Shown here: positions 43,911-56,695 of the stretch, piece by piece | How the letters are laid out: every line of letters begins with the position of its first letter | How positions within the stretch are numbered: position 1 is the first letter of the stretch | Assembly (NCBI GenBank): GCA_000388065.2 | Contig: KB932208.1 | Origin: Fonticula alba ATCC 38817 | Taxonomy: Eukaryota; Protista; Nucleariida | Length of the DNA stretch: 64,000 nucleotides | Strand: one strand, 5' to 3' | Made by a program: the position numbers and the translations under genes | Notes under the pieces: generated by a model | Told to the model about the DNA's origin: nothing | Database searches by the model: none | Seen by the model: the letters and a program-made list of their open reading frames with translations, nothing else

Positions 43911-44647
43911 ATGTCCACACCCGCCAAGTCGGTCGTGGAGGATTCCCCGCCCGGCGTTGCCGCCGAGCAGCCCCCCCTGCGGGTGCCCTTCTCGGCCACC
44001 ATTCCTGACACGCCGATTGTCGTCTCGGCCATGAGCATGGACACTTTGCAGTCGGCCAAGTCCGACCTGGCCGACCGCATCCAGTCCCTGGTTACTGATG
44101 CCGGCAATTCGGTGAAGCACTGCATCCGGGGGACGAACGTGCAGAATGTATGTGCTTCCCTTTTCCCGCGCTCACACGTGTCCTTCCTCGGTTCGGCACG
44201 CCGATTTCCTGACCCATTTCTCCCGCCTCCCTCCTTGGATGTCCCTTCCTCGCTGGAAGGAGCTCGCACGAATGAGCAAGAACCTGGCACAGGCCGAGCC
44301 GGATATCCTGTCCACCGGCCAGGTGCGCCCGGAGCCCCTCTTGGCCCTGCTCGCACATGACGCACATCTAACCAGATCCCCCCCCTTCGCGGCTCCTCTT
44401 CTTTCTGCGACGGACAGAGCGTCCGGCAAATGCACATCAGCGTAAATACGCTCATTGGCCAGTGCGTTGGGTGTGTGTTTGCCGCCCTTCAACCTGATCT
44501 TCCACTGACTGCGTCTCCTTCTCCGTTTGGTCATTCTCCGCGGGCGCGCACCTGTGTGCTTGCAGGGCATACGAGGTTGAGCGGCACATGCAGGCCATCA
44601 GCTCGATCATCGAGCGGGCTGACCCGTCGATGTGGCTGGTCGAGTGA
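43911..44647 (+). CDS. BORC subunit 7-like protein (4 exons)
   Basis: Spliced LADRIQSLVTDAGNSVKHCIRGTNVQN-ELARMSKNLAQAEPDILSTGQ-SVRQMHISVNTLIGQ-AYEVERHMQAI parallels metazoan BORCS7 (L.EKV.....D.....KQ..KGS.S.E.L....RN....E..I......L.KM). Recognised from memory, not by search. Confidence 0.62.
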
Positions 44648-44832
44648 TTGCGCCCCTGCCCTCAGTGTTTCAGAATCAATGCATGTCAATCCCCTCATTT
44701 CTTCACGACTTTCCCTGATCCGCCCACTTGGCGTACACTTGATGGGCTCGGCTCGGTCGAGTGGCCGCAGGCGGGGAGGGAGAGAGAGAGAGGCAGCGGG
44801 AGAAGCCGAGAGAGCAAAGCAGAGGGGGAACC

Positions 44833-44870
<38 letters not shown>

Positions 44871-44874
44871 GAGG

Positions 44875-44940
<66 letters not shown>

Positions 44941-44980
44941 GAGAGAGAGACGGGGAGGGAGAGAGAGAGAGAGAGAGAGG

Positions 44981-45049
<69 letters not shown>
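44833..45049. repeat. (GA)n microsatellite, about 215 nt
   Basis: Long, slightly interrupted GA dinucleotide array between the BORCS7-like gene and STE24. Confidence 0.95.
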
Positions 45050-45052
<3 letters not shown>

Positions 45053-45423
45053 GGGAGGCGGGGGACAGGTAGGGACATATGCGCTTTCATGGCGGCTGGG
45101 CTGGGCCTGTTGCGAGGGTCGGGGCAGATCGCGGCCGATCATGGCCGATGCGTTGGCACTCTCGCTCGATGTGCTCCCAACCGAAGGCTTGCCCCCGCCC
45201 CGAAGGCCGCCGGAGGGCCGGTTGTCTGACTCACTTGGGTCGCAACAGGGCGGGCATCATTAGAGTGCCCCCGGGGCGGTGGTTCTGAGAAAGGTCTCCG
45301 GGTAGCTAGATCACCTCCCTTCGCGCCTTCCTGGGTTCCTTCCTCTCCCTGGCTGTCTTTCCTTCTCGCTCCCTCCCTCCCTGCCCCCCCCCCTCCCCCC
45401 CCCGCCCCTGTCGATACACCACC

Positions 45424-47110
45424 ATGGCTGACATCGCTTCCGGCTTGCTTGCCGCGAAGCCCGAGGTGGCCAGCCTCACGATCGCGGGCTTCAGCTTGAA
45501 ATCCATCCTCGCCACCTTTTTCCTGGCTACCTTCCTGTTTGAGGTGCGTCACGCTCCGGCCGATGTCGCATGCCCTGGGTGGCCCGCCGAAGGGATGAAG
45601 TGTCGAGGCGGGGACCGGGGAGGCTTCCTTCACATGCTCACACGTAGTCCCTCCGTACCTCCACCTGGCAGCGTTATATCTCGGTTCGGCAGATCCGGAT
45701 GACGCGCATCAAGAAGCGCCCGGCCATCTTGAATGGCATTGTCGACGATGACGAGAAGTTCCTCAAGACCCAGGGTATGTGTTCTCATCGGCCTGGGGGT
45801 CGCGCGCCGGAGCGTGTCCGGATCAGCCCCTCCTCTGCCCGTCTCTTCGCTGGCCATTCCTGACCTCCTCATGTGTCAGATTACTCCTACGACAAGCTGG
45901 TGTTCGGCTTCGTCACGTCGACCCTGGAGATGTTCAAGTCCATGGTCTTCTTCCACTTTGATCTGCTGAAGGCCACCTGGGATCTTTCGGCCCACCTGCT
46001 GGAGGCGTATGGTCCGGCTTCGCTTGCGGGCAACCAGCTGGCCATTTCGCTCATCCTGCAGAACATCCTCTTCTTGTCGGAGACCCTGTTGGAGCTGCCC
46101 CAGTCCCTGTATTACAACTTCGTCATTGAGGAGCGGGTGCGTGTCAAGCCGGCCGTTCGCCCCCCCCCNNNNNNNNNNNNNNNNNNNNNNNNNNNNNNNN
46201 NNNNNNNNNNNNNNNNNNNNNNNNNNNNCCCCCCGCGCGCGCACGCGCGCCAACATAGTATGGCTTCAACAAGCAGACCCTGCGGCTGTTTGCCACCGAC
46301 CAGGTGAAGAACCTCTTCATCAGCATGATCATCCAGACGGCCATCATCCTGCCCATCATTTATCTCATCGGGTGGGGCGGTGAGCGCTTCTACCTGTGGG
46401 TGTACTTCTTCCTGCTGGGTGCGTTTGCCTGCGTCATTTGTCACGCATGCCATGCCGGTGCTTGCTCGAGGCTGACAGCGGAGCGGCCTTTTCGCCGGCC
46501 CGGAAACCCCCTCTCCCACCGTCATCCAGCCTTCCAGCTGGTTTTCCTGAACATCTACCCGACGCTCATCCAGCCGCTCTTCAACAAGTATGAGCCTCTG
46601 CCGGAGGGGCCGCTGCGAGACACCATCTACAAGCTGGCCAAGAAGATCTCCTTCCCCCTGACCGCCATCTACACGGTGGACGGGTCAAAGCGTTCGGGCC
46701 ATGCCAACGGTGCGCCGGCTTTTGTTGCCTGGTAGCCAGCGAGTCAGCCAGAGTCACACGCCCCCCCCCCCCCCCCACCCCCCTCCCGCCCGTACCACCC
46801 CCCCCCCACCCTCCCGCTCTCACCCCCCCCCTCTCCCCCCATCCTCCTCAGCCTACTTCTACGGGTTCTTCANNNNNNNNNNCCATCCTCCTCAGCCTAC
46901 TTCTACGGGTTCTTCAATAACAAGCGCATTGTCATCTACGACACCCTGATCAAGTCCCTGGAGCTGCCGGAGGTGGAGGCCGTCATGGCGCACGAGCTGG
47001 GCCACTGGTACCACAGCCACAACCTCAAGAACATGGCCATCCAGTACGACAGATGCTTTCTTTTTCTCTTTTTCGCATAAAGCATCCTTCCTTCTGCTGG
47101 GCTTTCTTTT

Positions 47111-47141
<31 letters not shown>

Positions 47142-47886
47142 CCTGTCCCTCTCCGCCTCATTCATCCGTGATGGTCATCCCGTCGCCGCTCGGTGCCACT
47201 CCTCAGGCAAGTGTCCACCTTCTCGATGATGTATGCATTCAGCTTCTTCGTCTTCAACCGATCCCTCTATTCCTCCTTCGGCTTCCATGTGCCGGCGGAC
47301 CAGGAGCTGCCCTACCTGGTCGGGCTGACGCTCTTCCTCCAGTGCTGGTCGGCTCTGAACCTGGCCATGAAGCTTCTGATGGTGCGCCGTCGGGAGGGGG
47401 ATTCCTGCGCCGCGCCCCGCTTCGGGCATTGGGCCTCTCCTCGACTGACACCCTCGCTTGCTCCCCTTCTCCTCGCCTGGCCGTTTGGACGCAGAATATG
47501 GTGTCACGCTCGTTCGAGTTCCAGGCCGATGCCTTTGCCTGTGGGCTCGGCTATGGCAAGGTCCTGCGTTCGGGCCTGCTCAAGATGCAGCTGGAGAACA
47601 TGTCCCAAATGCTGCCGGACTCCCTGTACTCCGTACGATCACATCATGGCCGGGGAATGGGCTCTACGGCTCCTTCCTAGGCCGTTGCCTCTTCGCCCTG
47701 GGTGTTTGCTTTTTAAATGCCCGTCCCTTGTGCCTCTCCGTGCGCCCGCTGACTCCTTCTTCCCGCCATGACTGGCCTGCCAACTTGCGGCCCTTGCTTT
47801 GAACCGTGCAGCTGTACAACTACACCCACCCGCCGATGCTGGAGCGCATCTCGGCCATCGACAAGCTGCTCCAGAAGAAGGATTAA
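45424..47886 (+). CDS. STE24: CAAX prenyl protease 1 (M48 zinc metalloprotease), multi-exon
   Basis: [67 protein letters not shown] (HExxH), SRSFEFQADAFA, DSLYS.YNY.HPPMLERI. Confidence 0.96.
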
Positions 47887-48461
47887 GCATTCGCCCCCCC
47901 CCCCCCCCCCTTCGGTTCCTCCCCTCGAAGCCCGGTGCAATGCGCAGGGGCTGCTCGTTTCTCTTGAAGCATGCCATCTTCCCGGGGATGCCTTTGTACT
48001 GTGGGATACACATGCACACGAGCGATGTGTCGTGTATATTTTTTTCGATCAGCCCCACCCTTCCGGGGGGAGGAGACGGGGCGGGCGCGGGGACAGGGGG
48101 GGCGGGGGACGAGAAGTGGCCAAGGAGGAAGTTGGCCGATTTGGGCGCCTCTGTCCGCCGAAAAGGAGCTGGGGGAGGGGGGGGGGGAGGGGAACAAAAT
48201 TTCGATGATTGTTTATCTGCCTGGTCGAGGCGCTGCTACCGGAGCCGGCGAAGCGGGAGAGGGAAGATGGTCTTGCCGGGGAGCAACACAGCGAGCAACA
48301 AGCAGAGGGGAAGAGTGTGTGGGTGAGGGCTGGTGCCTGGCACTTGGGGACCCGGAACGGGGACAACCCTCATTCTAATGTGCGTGTGCGCTGGGGGCGT
48401 CGGTTTCCTTTTTTTTTTTTGCCACGGCGTGGTGGGGGCCTCCAAGCCGGGGAATGTCTCT

Positions 48462-48693
48462 TCACAGAATGACGCAGGGATCCGGGAAATGGTCAGCGGT
48501 GGAGTCATTAGGGGAGCCTACACCACCGAGGGTGCGATCGTCAAGTCGGGGGGGGGGGGGGGGGGGGGGCCTTTGCGACCTGGGGGGGAGAAGGAACAAA
48601 AAAGGCCGAGGACAGGAGGGGAGGGAGGGAAGTGGTGGCGGTCGAACGAGGCACGTAGCACGCACTGGTGGTGGTCTTGGCAATGATCTCCAT
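48462..48693 (-). CDS. Putative 27-aa CAAX-terminated (prenylated) peptide precursor, a-factor-like; exons 48693-48666 and 48517-48462
   Basis: Kozak context GCCGCCACG-ATG-G. GTGCGT donor at 48665 and TAG acceptor at 48518 join in frame, and the intron carries the C-run typical of introns here. Product MEIIAKTTTSSPNDSTADHFPDPCVIL-stop. Confidence 0.68.
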
Positions 48694-49046
48694 CGTGGCG
48701 GCGGACAGAGGGTTCTGTTGGTGTGGGGTGCGGCCAAGGGTGCTCAATGAGGGAACAGGTCCTGGGCGAGGTGTTTCCAAGGGAGGTGTGGCCGTGGTGG
48801 TAAGCGCGGCAATGACGGGGGTGACTCGGACGATCGAGGGTGGTGTGTGTGTAGCCTGGCAGAAGTGGAGCTCTGAGGTAGCCACGAGAGCCGGGGGATA
48901 GCGGGATATGGGCGATTGCACGAGGGGAATGACTTAACGACGAGAGGGGGGATGAGTGCGCATGCAGAGGCGTGTGCGTTTGGCAAGAGGAGCTGAGGAG
49001 GTGGTAGATGCTCTTTCGTGTTTGACCGGGGCCACAGGGCTGGGTC

Positions 49047-49054
49047 TTTTTATA
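49047..49054 (-). promoter_or_regulatory. TATA-like box (TATAAAAA) upstream of the CAAX-peptide gene
   Basis: An AT-rich TATAAAAA on the minus strand is rare in this GC-rich DNA and lies about 350 nt upstream of the peptide ATG. Function is inferred. Confidence 0.4.
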
Positions 49055-52000
49055 GGCCACCCCCGGGGGCCGTCAGGCTCGCCTCGTGGCGAGGAGGCAC
49101 CAGGAGGCAAGTTGTCCCCCAGACGCGATGTCCATCGGGGGGGGGGGGGGGGGGGGNNNNNNNNNNNNNNNNNNNNNNNNNNGTCCCTGGACAGCCGATG
49201 GCACATGGGCATGTGGTGCCGGGAAATTCCATACTGGCCGTGGCCCATGCGCTTGGCCGGCAATAGATCATCCAGGGCACCTGCACCTGCACCCGCGCCC
49301 ACACCGACACCCACACACAGACATACGCACACAGGGCCAGGGGACGGGAGGGAGCCCGCAGGAAGGAAAGGGCTCAAGAAGGGGGGCAAATTCACGGCAA
49401 GTGAGACACTTGGCCCCCGGCTGGCGCCCCCTGCGTGGCTCCGTCACGCCCCTGCGGCCCCCGGTCCCGATGCCGGTCTGGGGGGCGATTGTTATTGTTG
49501 GTCGTCTTTCCGGGAAGCGTGATGCTTCTTCGTCCGGTAGAGTGTTCATTAGCCGGGCTTGCGCCGAGCGGGTGCGCCCGCTGGATCTGGCTGTTTGCCC
49601 CCAGGGTAATGCCACACATGCGGACCGATTGTCGAGATGCCGGGCTGAGAGCCAATCGCGATCGGCGAGCAGGCAGATTGCGTGTTTGGGCTGCCCACTG
49701 GTCCTGCCGAAGCCCCGAACGGAGGGAGGCAGCGAGACCGGTGAAGAGTCGAGCGCATGTGCGGCGCTGGCGAGGGCGAGCATCGAGACCGGGGGCGGGG
49801 GGGGGGGGGGGGAGATATTCAGTGTCCGGGGGCGCCGGAGCTCCCGGGTGTGCGTTAGGGCTCGTCCAGGCGCGATGGGCTCATTGCGGGCAGATTGGCA
49901 ACGCAATTCGGACAAACGCAATGCTTGTCCGGCGTCGTGAGGCAACACTGGGACTAGCCCGGGATTTGGCCGGTGGTGGCCGGAGAAGCAAGGGCACCCC
50001 GTGTGGCGTGCGTCGGCCAAGGGCAGCCGGGCATACTTCGCCCCTCAGCGCCCGGCGGTCTCACACGAGGGCGGATGTGGCGGAAAAGGAGTAAGCGAGA
50101 TGGCGCACCCTGCTGAGCGGCCCAGCCAGTTGTAGGTCTGATGCCAGCGAATGGGCTCCGCCCCCGGGACCAGGGGCTGGGGAAAGCGGAATGCATGCAC
50201 CGGGGATGTCTGTCTGTCCGCCTGGCCTCGGCTGCCCCCCCCGGGGGGGGGGGGGGGGGGGGGGAGAGGGCGGGGCATGGGCCGCGAGGGGGATGGGTGG
50301 GACTGGCCGAGTCTGTCGGGCGGGGTCCGGTGGTCAGAGGGTGCGGGGAGAGGGCGGGGGGAGGGCGGGGGGAGGTGGGCTCCCATAGCTAGGAGGCCGT
50401 CATGCCTCCCGCTGCCAGAGGCGGCGCGCGCTCGGGCGGCATGGGCATAAGTGCCGGACATGGGCATGCTGCGCTCGCGGGTGAGTTCGGGAGCTTGGCT
50501 GTCGAAAAGGGGCAGGACGCCGGGCCGTGGACACATGTGAATGCGTGCTTGCGCATTCGGTTCTGCGCGAAGCTGCTCCTGTGTCCTGGCGTCGGATGAT
50601 GTCTGCTCGGATGGGTTGATGTCTACTCGTGCGCGTGCGGGGGCCGGGAGAAGGTGGCGATGCGAGTCGCTGGTCGAGCGGGGGGGGGGGGGGGGGGGGA
50701 CCTGGACGGGAGACGGGCACAAAGAAATTGGTGGCCGGGCTCGGGGAAATTGCGGTTTCTCCTACCTCCGGGGCCAATGAACCGGAGCGTCTGGACCCGC
50801 GCCGGCGAGGTATAGCAGGCAGGCAGGCAAATGAACCCCCCGGCGACGCGGCCCTTCCTTTCCTCCAGGCCTCCATGAGCGGGCGACATATTGCTGGGGG
50901 AGGAAAATTCGTGCCTGGAGATTGTTTCCCTGTTTCGGGCGTTTGTCAAGCGGATTTTCGTCCGGTGGCTCCATGACAAGGCTAGTTCCACCCTTCGCTC
51001 CTCGGCCGGTCTTGGCTGCCTTCCCGGTCTACCCTTCGCCCGGGCTGGTCCCTCCCGGCCGGTGTGCTCGATGGGCTGCCTGCCCGGCAAAGGGCTCGGC
51101 GCATCCTGGTGGCGACCTTCTCCGGGGCAAAAAAGGAAAAAAAAAACCCTCGCCCGCCCAGACCCGCGGGGGGCCGAGAGGGAACCATCTCTGGGTGTTG
51201 AGCTCCGCGAGCAGTGGCTCGTGGGCGGCCGACAAGCTGTCGCGAGTCTCGCGAGGCGCCACCACCGACTCTCCCCAGGCCAATGGGCCTTCGAGGTCCG
51301 GCCATGGGGGGATAAAACGCCGGACCCCTCGCTGGCTGGTGAGACCAGCGGCATGGCGGGAGCCATCCCCGGGGGTTCGCCCGAAACTGGCCCCCTCTGC
51401 CTCGGTCTCCCTCGGGGAAGATCCAGCGGGGCAGGCGGCCGGTCGGTCGAAAGACCAACGGTAGACGCCTGCGCTCGCCGCCTGCCTGCGCTCGCCTCCC
51501 CACGGCCGCGGCACTGAATAGAGGACAGGACCACTCGACAGGGGGCCCGTGCCCGGAAGCACCAAGCCGAGAAATGCCACCCCGAAGCGGGAGGTGACCC
51601 GGACGGGCTTTAACGGGTCGGGGTCACATAAAGACCATCGGCAGCATGGCCAGTGGCGGGGAATATCTTGACAAGCATGTCTGTCCGTTCCACATGCACC
51701 CCCCCCCCCCCCCCTTGCGAGGCGTGTGTGCTGTGTTTGAATATGTGCATATACGTGCGTATGATCGCGTGCGTGCGTGTGTGCCGAGGCGCTCGGCTCC
51801 CCGGGGTGTCTTCTTGTTTGGACGGTCGCCGATGGTGGGGGATTGTTTTTATTAGGAGGATAAACCAGCCACTCGGCCACGGGGCCGCTTCCCCGGGGAG
51901 AGGGCGAGTGTGTATGTATGTGTGTGGCGCCTGCCGGCCCTCCGGCGGCCTGGACGCACTTGCCGTTCGGTTGGGGGCATTGCCGAGACGGGGCACCCTG

Positions 52001-53211
52001 GGTAACTTGCTCGAGGGCGGAGAATGGCCCGGGCGGCGGAGGGAATAGATGAGCCACAGGTCCCTGGGGGTTTCACTGGGCCCCTGCCGGGGCGTGTTCC
52101 GGCGACTTCCTCGACGGAACTTAATCATTTCGCCCTTTCGGCCTCTCCCACCGGCCCGACGCCGAGACGCGTCGAGTCTTTGTCGGAGCCGTCAGAGAGG
52201 CCCGCCGGGAAGAGCCCCTGCCGAAGTGCGAGCGAGACCCCCCCCGGTGCTGGTCAAACATCGCTCTCTGGTGGAGCGCCTGCTCAACGCCTCACGTCTC
52301 GCGGTCCGGCAACATACACGTGCAGCTACTGACAGCGGGGGAGGGCGGGGGGGGGGGGGGGGGGATTTAAAATGCTTTCCTCGACACAGCACAGGCCCGC
52401 CGCGTGCTCGGGTGCAACCCCCATCGACCAAGGGATCGCGTCGGGCTGTTTTGTTGGCTGGCGTCGAAACCGCCGCGAGTCGGAAGGCCGGGACGCGGGG
52501 GTAGCCATCATGGCTGGGTGAGCTCTGCGTCGGGAAAGCTCTTCTGCCGCCTCCCGGCTGTCCGGCACGAATGCCGAACCAAACCGGCCGGACGCCGGGC
52601 AGGGCATTCGTGTGCACGGCTCACCCCTGTGCGCAGGTCCGCAGTGGATCTGGCATCGAGCCCGGGGGAGAAAACGCCCTCTCCCGTTGCCCTCCATCCG
52701 CGGCGGTCGCGTGCCCGGGGGGCGGGGGCGACCATGAGGGCCCCGAACGCGCCCCGCACCCTTTGGACCCGTGTCTCGGGCAGTGGAATTAACACGCTCG
52801 CGGGCCGGCCTCCTTGGCCAGTGGGTGCTGCCTGGAGAGTTCTGACCGGCAGGCCGGGTGATGGGGCAGACCGGGCGCAGGAACGAGGGAGGGGCCCGCC
52901 CAGGAAGGAAGAGCACACCATAAATATGTGGCCCCCCCCTGCCTGTCCCCCCGATCCGAGCGAGGCTGCCCAGATGTGGCTAGCCCACAACACCGCATGC
53001 CAACGCTCGGCATGGGTCGTCACGCGATGCCGGCCCGGCACCTTGGCGCGTAACCCGAGGTGGGTTAAGGAATGGAGGAAACTGGCGCGATTGCACTCCC
53101 CACAATGCGGTGTCGGCGGTGTTTTATTTCGATTGTGGCGTAGCACAAGTTCCGCCATTGGGGCGGTGCTCCTGCTCCAAGTGGGGAGGGCGCCCCCCAA
53201 AAAGGACCCCG

Positions 53212-56200
53212 CTACTCCCGGGTGGAATGCGTCGAATCGCTCGAATCAACGTGCAATGCCTGGGAGGAATGATCCATCTCCACAGGGGGTTGGTGTTCTG
53301 GGGGCGGCGCCGCGGTGGCTGCCAGCTCGGAGAGGCCCGAGGGTTCGCCCGAGGAGCTCGAGCTGGGCTCATGTGCCGATGCCTCGGGGGTGGGGGAGGT
53401 CTCCCCGGAAACCGGAGCGACAGCCGCCTCGAGAGCCCCGGCGGCGGCGGCCTTGGCGGCCCGGCGGCGCTGGCGAAGAGTCAAATAGACGACCACCGTG
53501 CCCAGCATCAAACAGAGGAGGATCGAGCATCCTACTGACACGCCGATGACCATGGCTAATGAGGTGAAGGATAGAGAGGGCGGGAGAGGGGGGAGGTGAG
53601 AAAAAGGGCAGCGGAGGGGAAAGAGAGAGCAGAGGAGGGGAAAGAGAGAGGGCAGTGAAGAGGGAGGAGAGAGGACAGTGAAGAGGGAGGAGAGAGGACA
53701 GTGAAGAGGGAAAGTGAAGAGGAAAGAGAGAGCAGAGGAGAGGGAGGAGAGAGCAGTGAAGAGAAAAGAGAGAGAGAGAAGCGAGGAAAACCGAGAGAGA
53801 GAGAGAGAGAGAGAGGGCAGCGGAGAGGAGAGGAAGAGGCAGGGGGAAAGCCACCAGACACGCACTCCTCCAGTAGAGCTCGCGCTCTTCGTTCCACTTG
53901 GTACATTGATCAGTCCGGCGCCCGGAGCACTGAAGACAGCCCTCGGCACAGGAGAGGCAGACGCCCGGCGCGCCCTCGGGGCTGGAGCCGAAGAAGCCCG
54001 CCGGGCAGCTCTCCACACAGCCGACCCCTTCGTGGAGGAAGGCATTGAGGATGCAGCGCTGGCAGTTGGTGCCGTCCGGGGGGTCGCAGCGATCGCACAG
54101 GCGGTCCTGGCAGGGGACACACGACCGGCCTTCGGTGTCTTCCACAAAGCCCACCGGCGGGCAGGACTGGACGCAGGAGCCGCCATGCAGGAGCAGGTCC
54201 GACAGGCAGGTGACGCAAATGGCTGTCGGGGAGCTGGTGTTGGGATTCCGAGCGCACGTGGAGCACAGGTGGGGGCAGGCCGCGCACACCGGCGAGCCCC
54301 GGTCATCCAGACTGGAGATGTAGAAGCCATCCCGACAGCGGGAATGGCACGACCCGTCGATCAGCTCAAAGGCCTCGTGGCAAACGAGGCACAGCTCGGC
54401 GGGCGGTCCGTCCGGGTCCTCCTCGAGGCCGCCGCCCTGGTAGTCCGGGTTCAGCCGGCACGTCCGGCAGGAGGGGTCGCAAGAAACACAGCGCCGGCCG
54501 TGCGGGGCGTCAAGGCGCGTGCCGTCCTCCGGACACGCCTCAACACAGGTCCCCAGCGAGGCATGAAGCAGGAGGGGCTCATGGCAGGCGGTGCACCGGT
54601 CGGCGAAGTCCTCGCACTCGAGGCAGGCATTGGTGTCGCAGGGGAGGCAGTCGGCCGCGTGGGAGGACCCGTCGCCGGGGCCCGGGGAGACCGGGTGGAA
54701 GGTGCCGGCCGCGCAGCGGGCCCGGCATTGGCCCTCCTGCAGGAGGAGCCCCGGAGCACAGCCGGTGCATTGGCGCCCGGAGGGGCCGTCACACGTGGCA
54801 CATGTGCTGGCGCAGGGGGCACACGCGTCCCCTTGGGGGAAGTACCCCTCGAGGCAGGCGCCCGGCCGGTTGCCATCCGGGCAGGTGGCCCCGGGGGAGG
54901 GGGCACGGCCATCGGTGCAGAGGTCGCACCGGTCAACCTCCGGGCCGGAGCATTGTCGACATCCCGCGGCACAGGGCTCACACCGGCCGGACAGGGTGAA
55001 GTACCCCTCCGGACAGGGGCCCGCTTGACAGGGCCCCCCGGCGCCGGGGGGGTGAAGGAGCAGGCCGCCGGCACAGCGGAGGCAGGCATCCAGGTCGGCC
55101 GGCGGGCAGGCGGCACAGCCGGCGGCCCGGCAGGGCTGGCACTGGGCCCCCACCCGGGGGTCTTCGCTGTCGATGGCCACGGTCCCATCGAGGCAGCGTC
55201 GGCGACACATGCCGGCGGCCGGATCGAGGGACAGCCCCCCGATGCAGCGGGTGCATTGGGTCTCCTGTTGCCCGGTGCACTCGGCGCATGTGGGATGGCA
55301 GGCCAAGCACACCCCGGCCGGGCCGGGGGCCGTGCCCTCGGGGCACGCCTCGCGGCAGTCACCCTGCCAGAGGTAGGGCGCAGCAGGGGCAACGCCGGCG
55401 GCCACATCGCCACGACAGCGAAGGCATTGGCCAGGGAGCGGGCCGGTGCACACCTCGCAGCTGGCACTCGCGCACGAAGCACTGCAGGGGGCCGGTGCTT
55501 GGGAGTCGGAGCTGGCCGAGTCCGGGGAGGGGGGGCTGGCGAGGAAGGGCCCGCAGGGGCTGTGGCATGCGGCCGGGTCTTCGCCCTCGAAAGAGGGGCC
55601 GGTGATGGAGGAGCTCGCCGGGAGCAGGCCCGCCCGGCAGGAGAGGCAATCCCCGGGCCCCGGGCCGGAGCATGTGTCGCACAGCGGATGGCAGGCCGGG
55701 CAGAGGGGGCTCTCGGGGGGGCTGGGAGCATGGCCGGCCGCCGGGCAGGCGTCGCCCTCCGGGGCGCAGGAAAAGTCCCCCAGCAGAAGCCGCCGGCCGA
55801 CGGTGCACCGGTCGCACTCGGCCCCGGAGGAGCATGTCAAGCAGTCCTCCGGGCAGGGATCGCACGCGACGCCGAAGAGCCCAGGGGCCAGGGGAGCCGC
55901 GAACCAGCCATCCAGGCAGCCGGTGCAGGTGGCCTGCGGGGTCCCCGGCTCGAGGCAGGCCAGGCAGCCGGCTGGGCAGGCCACGCACTCGGCCGCCTCG
56001 GTGGGGGAGGTTCCCTCGGGGCAGCGGCGCCCGCAGCGGCCGGTGGCCGGGTCCAGCAGGAGCCCATCGACACAGGAAGTGCACGCGGTGGGGCCGAGCC
56101 CGGCACATGTGGCACAGCTGACATGGCAACGGGTGCATGGGGGTTGGTGGCCATGCTCATCGGGCTCGTCGGTGTACCAGCCCGGCTGGCAGGCGTCGCA

Positions 56201-56695
56201 AATGGTGGCCTCCCCCTCGGAGCCGGTATCCAGATGGTGGCAGGCGGCGCAGTGGCCGCCGCCGGAGCAGGGAAGGCACTGCCGACCCGGGGCCAGGGCC
56301 GTGCCCGGGGGGCAGGCCGGCACGCAGTGGCCATTGAAGAGGACATTCGGGGCGAAGCAGGCGGCACACTCGAATTCCGACCGGGAGGCCGAGGTGCAGG
56401 CGGCGCACGACCGATGGCAGGGGAGGCAGGCGCCGGCGCTGGTGTCGTGGAAGTGCCCCAGCGAGCAGGCAGTGCAGGGGGCTGGCTGGTCGGTGCTTTT
56501 CGGGGCCGTGCAGGAGGTGCAGCCCGAGGGGCAGGGGGTGCAGGCGCAGTCGGGGGCCAGGTAGAAGGCCCCTTCGCAGAGGGTGCCCTCGCAGGCGGGC
56601 CGGACGGGCGGTGCCAGGAGCAGGAGCCCGGCGAGCAGCAGCACCAAGAGGAGGAGCGCGCGAGGGGGGCGGCAAGGTGGAGATGGCACAGCCAT
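53212..56695 (-). CDS. Type I membrane protein with many furin-like (CxxC) cysteine-rich repeats, about 1060 aa (exons 56695-53866, 53555-53212)
   Basis: Signal peptide (RALLLLVLLLAGLLLLA) and repeated C.PCH.SC.TC.GP....C..C..G.YL..G.C...CP.G units. A GTGCGT..TTAG intron joins in frame to the TM helix MVIGVSVGCSILLCLMLGTVVVYL, a basic stop-transfer RQRRR and a short Ser/Pro/Glu tail. Confidence 0.85.

Follow-up and report, generated by a model that had tools for sequence, protein, structure and literature searches.

Does a short gene ending in a CaaX box, lying tail-to-tail with the gene for the CaaX protease STE24, form a functional unit with that protease, or have two unrelated genes met by chance? 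The question is raised by a locus in the protist Fonticula alba, on a stretch of 64,000 nucleotides (nt) of scaffold KB932208.1 (GCA_000388065.2) that starts at about base 1,700,371 of the scaffold and has a GC content of about 65%; this whole stretch is called the window, and all positions below are positions in it. An earlier reading of the window (hereafter the sequence-only reading) had paired a CaaX-peptide gene with STE24 as substrate and maturase. RNA evidence for the present analysis consisted of Logan contigs from four runs (X1-X4) of two samples in one study, with the strand of the contigs deduced from splice sites alone. The peptide gene proved to be a genuine spliced transcript, predicted to encode 27 residues ending in CVIL, and its physical linkage to STE24 is most likely coincidental; on balance, we favour two real, independent and convergent genes that are adjacent by chance.

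An unannotated spliced gene beside STE24

In the NCBI annotation (GCA_000388065.2), the next gene after STE24 lies on the minus strand at 53212-56695, which leaves a gap of 5.3 kb, the expected place for an unannotated gene. RNA contigs outline a small transcription unit in this gap, with the following features (ORF, open reading frame; UTR, untranslated region):

49046..49054, minus strand: putative TATA box TATAAAAAG, 57 nt upstream of the 5' ends of the RNA contigs (48997)
48202..48997, minus strand: peptide transcription unit, absent from the annotation, defined by RNA contigs X1-X4; 648 nt when spliced
48934..48963, minus strand: upstream ORF of 9 codons in the 5'UTR, with the weak start context ctctgcATGC
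48666..48693, minus strand: coding exon 1 of the predicted peptide, MEIIAKTTT plus the first base of a Ser codon, with the start context gccacgATGG
48518..48665, minus strand: intron of 148 nt in phase 1, GTGCGT...TAG, which holds a long poly-C run
48462..48517, minus strand: coding exon 2 of the predicted peptide, (S)SPNDSTADHFPDPCVIL plus the stop TGA at 48464-48462, with the CaaX box CVIL
48202..48461, minus strand: 3'UTR of at least 260 nt with an A12 run, overlapping a 90-codon ORF in another frame (48508-48236)

The peptide ORF, MEIIAKTTTSSPNDSTADHFPDPCVIL, is 27 codons long, starts with the ATG at 48693 on the minus strand, follows a 5'UTR of about 304 nt and exists solely after splicing. 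Past the acceptor (...GTGTAG) its frame reads SSPNDSTADHFPDPCVIL and then the TGA at 48464-48462, which is where the sequence-only reading had placed the stop of the peptide (48462, minus strand). The intron joint, from 48516/48517 to 48665/48666 (CT..AC on the plus strand), was found in 4/4 RNA runs, with an RNA depth of zero inside the intron, and its donor, GTGCGT, is also the most frequent donor of the STE24 introns. The motif TATAAAA has two occurrences on both strands of the window (128 kb), one of them being the putative TATA box of the peptide gene at 49054, and RNA depth is zero at 49011-49086. At the RNA level the peptide gene is real, a spliced transcript probably driven by this TATA box, and the gene model supplied here for its locus is new, being absent from GCA_000388065.2.

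Long homopolymer runs, of poly-C (about 47893-47912, about 48541-48561) and of G-rich sequence (about 48171-48194, about 49140-49156), interrupt the RNA contigs in this region and make false joints. Joints in the RNA table from 47913 and 48192 to 49136 were rejected as poly-G/poly-C assembly artefacts and are not splices.

Exact look-up in a collection of 15 billion proteins showed the 27-residue peptide, the 90-residue product of the alternative ORF and the 91-residue product of the unspliced ORF all to be absent from it, and searches of the window with the peptide and its mRNA by tblastn and blastn returned no paralogue and no repeat.

Coding potential and predicted product

Four ATGs are present in the spliced 648-nt RNA, opening the 9-codon upstream ORF, the 27-codon ORF and two ORFs in another frame (90 and 45 codons). 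The 27-codon ORF uses the first ATG in a strong context, gccacgATGG, which resembles that of STE24 (caccaccATGG), and its frame is maintained across the confirmed phase-1 intron. Codon usage was scored as log-odds under a model trained on about 4,100 codons from strongly periodic coding windows of the 64-kb window, with the peptide locus excluded; stop-free noncoding windows and 434 noncoding ATG-initiated ORFs of 15-60 codons served as controls. The peptide ORF scored +15.0 bits, compared with 19.3 +/- 5.1 bits for 27-codon windows of STE24 (5th percentile 11.5) and -13.5 +/- 10.5 bits for the stop-free noncoding windows. Its score was matched by 0.4% of the noncoding windows and by 1/434 of the noncoding ORFs, and the sole 30-codon window to reach at least 10 bits on either strand between 47.9 and 53.3 kb lies over exon 1 of the peptide. 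The 90-residue overlapping ORF was rejected as the product of the transcript: it scores -41 bits, 15% of its codons end in A, and it spans the A12 run.

The C-terminal motif was weighed by its chance frequency. Strict matches to C-[AVILMF]-[AVILMF]-X-stop number four in the six frames of the 64 kb, which leads to an expectation of about 0.04 within 600 bp of a given point, and we estimate that about 0.1% of six-frame stops are preceded by a strict CaaX box (4 against the roughly 3,000 stops that base composition predicts). The loose form, CXXX-stop, occurs 58 times in the six frames of the 64 kb. The CaaX motif taken by itself is weak evidence; it is joined by a transcript, a splice, a start context and codon usage, and the candidate therefore stands above chance. 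The micro-gene is spliced once, would be driven by its own TATA box and is most likely translated from the first strong AUG into 27 residues ending in CVIL, and we consider it likely that this predicted peptide is made. The CaaX-peptide gene of the sequence-only reading is upheld as an expressed and spliced unit with a coding-like 27-residue CVIL ORF, on RNA and codon score, and its coding status stays at likely. Being probably coding, the gene is of value for itself as one missed by annotation, and if it is translated, the closest protist relatives of Fungi have a CaaX micropeptide that is new and unannotated.

Maturation of the product can be predicted from the motif. GGTase-I accepts CaaX boxes whose last residue is Leu, Phe or Met (PMC9231725), and because CVIL ends in Leu, a geranylgeranyl group is predicted on the peptide Cys, as a prediction from the motif only. 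The Cys would be geranylgeranylated by GGTase-I, Rce1 and/or Ste24 would cleave off the VIL tripeptide, and the C-terminus thus exposed would then be methylated. This would leave either a small peptide anchored in the membrane by its lipid or, with lower probability, a lipopeptide that is exported, and Ste24 may act on the peptide as on any CaaX protein.

Two convergent genes and their adjacency

The other member of the pair is defined as follows, together with the spacer between the two units:

45424..47886, plus strand: STE24, CAAX prenyl protease 1 (H696_05044), nine exons, 451 residues, HELGH at residues 306-310
45424-45543, 45672-45774, 45880-46136, 46259-46418, 46530-46709, 46896-47043, 47207-47381, 47495-47632 and 47812-47886, plus strand: exons of STE24
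47887..48201, no strand: spacer between the convergent units, with two homopolymer runs (poly-C, about 47893-47912; G-rich, about 48171-48194); RNA depth zero at 47947-48098

The nine-exon model has no internal stops, ends with a TAA at 47884-47886 on the plus strand and yields a 451-residue product identical at every residue to the NCBI protein H696_05044; its last three introns were confirmed as RNA joints (contigs of 1358-1417 nt, four runs). Pfam matches to Peptidase_M48_N (1.2e-49) and Peptidase_M48 (2.9e-41), both over their curated cut-offs, cover the full length of the protein, and HELGH at 306-310 is its HEXXH zinc-binding motif. Residues 26-450 align to the yeast Ste24p structure 4IL3 (E=1e-85), with EFQAD opposite EYQAD, and the protein also aligns to structures of human ZMPSTE24 (4AW6: full-length and collinear). 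The neighbour had been named as the STE24 protease from its sequence, and the domains, the zinc motif, the 4IL3 alignment and the identity to H696_05044 confirm that name. Compared with Ste24p and ZMPSTE24 (M48A), the F. alba protein is alike in both Pfam domains, in the HEXXH, E-x-Q-A-D and C-terminal motifs and in its 451-residue length, with no notable difference. Its closest relatives are fungal orthologues at no more than 47% identity, which fits a deep-branching lineage, and H696_05044 is the sole F. alba entry among the best matches listed for it. STE24 would accordingly be described as the sole annotated F. alba orthologue of Ste24/ZMPSTE24, a zinc metalloprotease of the endoplasmic reticulum with a housekeeping role across eukaryotes. 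Judged by these features, it is an intact, expressed, ordinary and unspecialised M48 CaaX protease orthologue with predicted activity, and as an ordinary full-length orthologue it does not have the character of a paralogue dedicated to a linked precursor.

STE24 on the plus strand and the peptide ORF on the minus strand converge with their stops 576 bp apart (TAA at 47884-47886, TGA at 48464-48462), in agreement with the tail-to-tail arrangement and the distance of about 575 bp given by the sequence-only reading. Their promoters are separate and lie about 3.6 kb apart. No shared or overlapping transcript is seen, because the RNA contigs leave 47947-48098 bare, in a region where homopolymers break contigs. 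RNA depth is about 29-34 over STE24 and about 5-6 over the peptide RNA, a difference of about five-fold, and the small changes between samples are opposite in direction (n=2).

Several points weigh against the reading of two real, independent genes brought together by chance. The codon signal of the peptide ORF comes mostly from its first 17 or so codons, the last 10-12 being near neutral. Translation of the ORF, most likely as it is, is a prediction from RNA and sequence features, and the RNA side consists of Logan contigs from a single study with two samples, their strandedness taken from splice sites alone. The adjacency itself is a non-trivial coincidence, because the prior for a random neighbour of STE24, given one gene, is about 2 in 6000 (about 3e-4); we take the number of genes in F. 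alba to be about 6,000, and the locus tag itself shows at least 5,044. This prior is about 10 times higher if adjacency to any prenyl- or pheromone-pathway gene is counted, and higher still if there are several micro-genes.

The strongest alternative takes the small spliced RNA to be noncoding, or to be transcriptional noise from an intergenic gap, with a CVIL ORF that arose by chance, leaving STE24 with no substrate here. An ORF of just 27 codons placed between a 5'UTR of about 304 nt with an upstream ORF and a 3'UTR of at least 260 nt would fit this, as would an RNA depth of about 5 beside about 30 for STE24, the lack of annotation and of any entry in the 15-billion-protein collection, the near-neutral score of the C-terminal 10-12 codons and the frequency of loose CXXX-stop motifs (58 per 64 kb). 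However, the codon score falls within the range of coding sequence, a level that 0.2-0.4% of noncoding controls attain, the frame stays intact across the phase-1 intron, the start is the first strong-context AUG, and a strict CaaX box precedes an estimated 0.1% or so of six-frame stops. A search of 47880-49156 with Rfam found no known family, and no snoRNA-like element was seen in the peptide intron. A snoRNA host gene was rejected on the same search, which gave a chance-level lncRNA match only (E=0.64). We therefore hold a noncoding transcript to be possible and rather unlikely, and a coding gene independent of STE24 remains the preferred reading.

The sequence-only reading had gone further and proposed a selected substrate-plus-maturase cluster or proto-mating locus, in which an a-factor-like precursor is linked to the Ste24 that processes it at both ends, at the CaaX tail and at the N-terminal extension. 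The closeness of the two stops and the rarity of random adjacency to STE24 speak for such a cluster, and its premise that yeast Ste24 acts at two stages when a-factor matures is correct (PMC2148179). The predicted peptide also has an a-factor-type layout. Pheromone genes are recognized by a length below 100 residues and a C-terminal CaaX or CPAX box, the CaaX being their sole strictly conserved feature and insufficient for identification (PMC10569646); the F. alba peptide has 27 residues, ends in CVIL and is rich in Ser and Thr in its N-terminal half (7/10 residues at positions 7-16). Precursors of the a-factor type (MFA1/MFA2, Neurospora mfa-1, basidiomycete Mfa/Phb) are likewise very short, Mfa1p having 36 residues (parts in PMC2148179). 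They share with the F. alba peptide a Ser/Thr-rich N-terminal part and a C-terminal CaaX box, and their genes are small independent transcripts routinely overlooked by annotation, as is the F. alba micro-gene. If translated, the peptide bears on when lipopeptide signals originated, because its layout is that of a fungal lipopeptide pheromone precursor.

Against a selected cluster, the two genes are convergent, have separate promoters and show unequal RNA levels that do not change in parallel (n=2 samples), and STE24 looks like an unspecialised, full-length housekeeping orthologue. The likeness to a-factor is also incomplete: a-factor is farnesylated, whereas the F. alba peptide, its CaaX box ending in Leu, is predicted to be geranylgeranylated, and CVIL falls by motif prediction outside the farnesylated a-factor type, in which the last residue is other than Leu, Phe or Met. 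Geranylgeranylated a-factor is reported to be less active, and the standing of Ste24 as a genuine or general CaaX protease has been disputed in several reports (PMC9231725). F. alba lies outside the Fungi, and Ste3-type receptors are listed among the fungal novelties in a data set that includes Fonticula (PMC10406608). In the literature we found no paper connecting Fonticula to pheromones, CaaX peptides or Ste3. To our knowledge, no mating has been described for Fonticula alba. In S. cerevisiae, STE24, MFA1 and MFA2 lie on three different chromosomes, and the pheromone genes known to us are either linked to receptors (basidiomycete P/R loci) or unlinked, and never linked to STE24. Within 10 kb on either side of the F. 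alba pair there is no seven-transmembrane (7TM) receptor, ABC transporter or HD/HMG mating-type regulator, and hence neither a receptor nor an exporter gene; the neighbours are WDR75, a pyridoxal phosphate (PLP)-dependent decarboxylase, BORCS7 and a 1057-residue Cys-rich protein, none of them related to mating or prenylation. A proto-mating locus is not supported by these neighbours.

Nor is the linkage conserved in seven early-diverging fungi. The STE24 regions compared were those of Rhizophagus, Mortierella, Syncephalis, Cladochytrium, Gaertneriomyces, Phlyctochytrium and Spizellomyces (nucleariids were not among them), and in each an ordinary convergent gene lies 67-218 bp downstream of STE24. 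These genes encode IGPD, SSB, Zip, 2-Hacid_dh (2-hydroxyacid dehydrogenase), TAF4 and, twice, PEX8, which is the convergent neighbour of STE24 in both Phlyctochytrium and Spizellomyces. A CaaX mini-gene downstream of STE24 was found in none of the seven (7/7 negative), and the F. alba STE24 neighbourhood, BORCS7 included, shows no conservation with any of these loci. Strict CaaX-stop motifs within 2 kb of fungal STE24 number 10 in 28 kb, compared with 39 in 152 kb overall, which is no enrichment, and just one of these closes an ORF that begins with ATG and reaches 15 codons; it has 19 codons and comes from Syncephalis.

This ORF, at L004:9847-9908 on the plus strand in Syncephalis plumigaleata, shares its strand with STE24, ends in CFVL and has its stop about 95 nt upstream of the STE24 start codon. 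Given a CaaX-stop density of 0.41 per kb in this AT-rich locus, it probably arose by chance or is part of the leader. In Gaertneriomyces, a gene with a PEX8 domain lies about 8 kb further downstream of STE24.

The pair can also be likened to the loci of ribosomally synthesized and post-translationally modified peptides (RiPPs), in which a short precursor-like ORF lies beside a protease gene, as in F. alba. Eukaryotic RiPP loci (Galerina AMA1 with POPB, ustiloxin-type clusters) employ dedicated paralogue enzymes, are co-regulated and keep their linkage among producers. Unlike those dedicated enzymes, the F. alba protease is a sole housekeeping orthologue, and we know of no precedent for selected clustering of a substrate with a housekeeping protease. 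Orientation, expression (n=2), neighbours and the seven fungal loci do not bear out the substrate-plus-maturase mini-cluster or the proto-mating locus, and the synteny comparison turned up unrelated neighbours and no CaaX mini-gene. The cluster reading is not supported beyond the adjacency, an unproven coincidence, and we judge a selected cluster to be very improbable. Slimmer still is the chance that F. alba, of the sister lineage of Fungi, makes a geranylgeranylated a-factor-like signal and keeps one of the precursor genes linked to the maturing Ste24. If true, such a linked signal would mean that lipopeptide signalling predates Fungi and would provide a eukaryotic cluster of a housekeeping protease and its substrate; if the peptide gene worked as one unit with STE24, a protist would offer a rare example of a substrate clustered with its protease, for which the current basis is the adjacency alone.

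A longer CaaX protein (about 100 residues at most), translated from a non-AUG start upstream of Met1, is the least probable of the named alternatives: the 76 codons that precede the ATG in its frame are free of stops, but an open run of that length is about 15% likely at the GC content of the window (estimated from base composition), and the upstream frame is noncoding-like in its flat GC at the three codon positions (0.63/0.63/0.64), its 20% of A-ending codons and its score of -22 bits. Taken with whatever else is left over, it makes up a very small remainder beside the favoured reading of two independent genes.

Flanking sequence and assembly gaps

The genes on either side of the pair, and two assembly gaps inside STE24, are as follows:

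43911-44647, plus strand: BORCS7-domain gene, 141 residues, between the PLP-decarboxylase gene and STE24
53212-56695, minus strand: annotated 1057-residue protein with a signal peptide, dozens of furin-like/growth-factor-receptor-type Cys-rich repeats and one C-terminal hydrophobic segment
46169..46228, no strand: assembly gap 1, inside STE24 intron 3 (46137-46258), coding sequence unaffected
46840..46915, no strand: assembly gap 2 (46873-46882, 10 N) in STE24 intron 5, flanked by two copies of about 32 nt

The 1057-residue protein is 12% Cys and has no confident Pfam family, with a weak match to GF_recep_IV (E=0.008); its features suggest a secreted or single-pass membrane protein. Between it and the peptide gene, the roughly 4 kb at 49200-53200 hold no annotated gene and no Pfam match, and no coding-like window was seen on either strand up to 53.3 kb. 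Other intergenic spacers at the locus measure 0.4-1.9 kb, and by that standard the length of this empty stretch is unusual.

Both gaps in STE24 are harmless to its coding sequence. The alignment to 4IL3 runs ungapped over the exon 3/4 junction, and hence past gap 1. At gap 2, the copies of about 32 nt comprise the acceptor of intron 5 and the beginning of exon 6 and are present as a single copy in the RNA; the duplication is an unmerged contig overlap, an assembly artefact. RNA contigs (1358-1417 nt) join the end of exon 5 straight to 46895/46896, past gap 2, and carry 853-855 nt 5' of the exon 5/6 joint, where exons 1-5 account for 820 nt plus a short 5'UTR. Because the RNA contigs and their lengths fit the nine-exon model, no coding sequence is hidden in either gap. 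Shortly 5' of the STE24 start, a long (GA)n/(AG)n microsatellite with C-rich tracts occupies 44700-45055.

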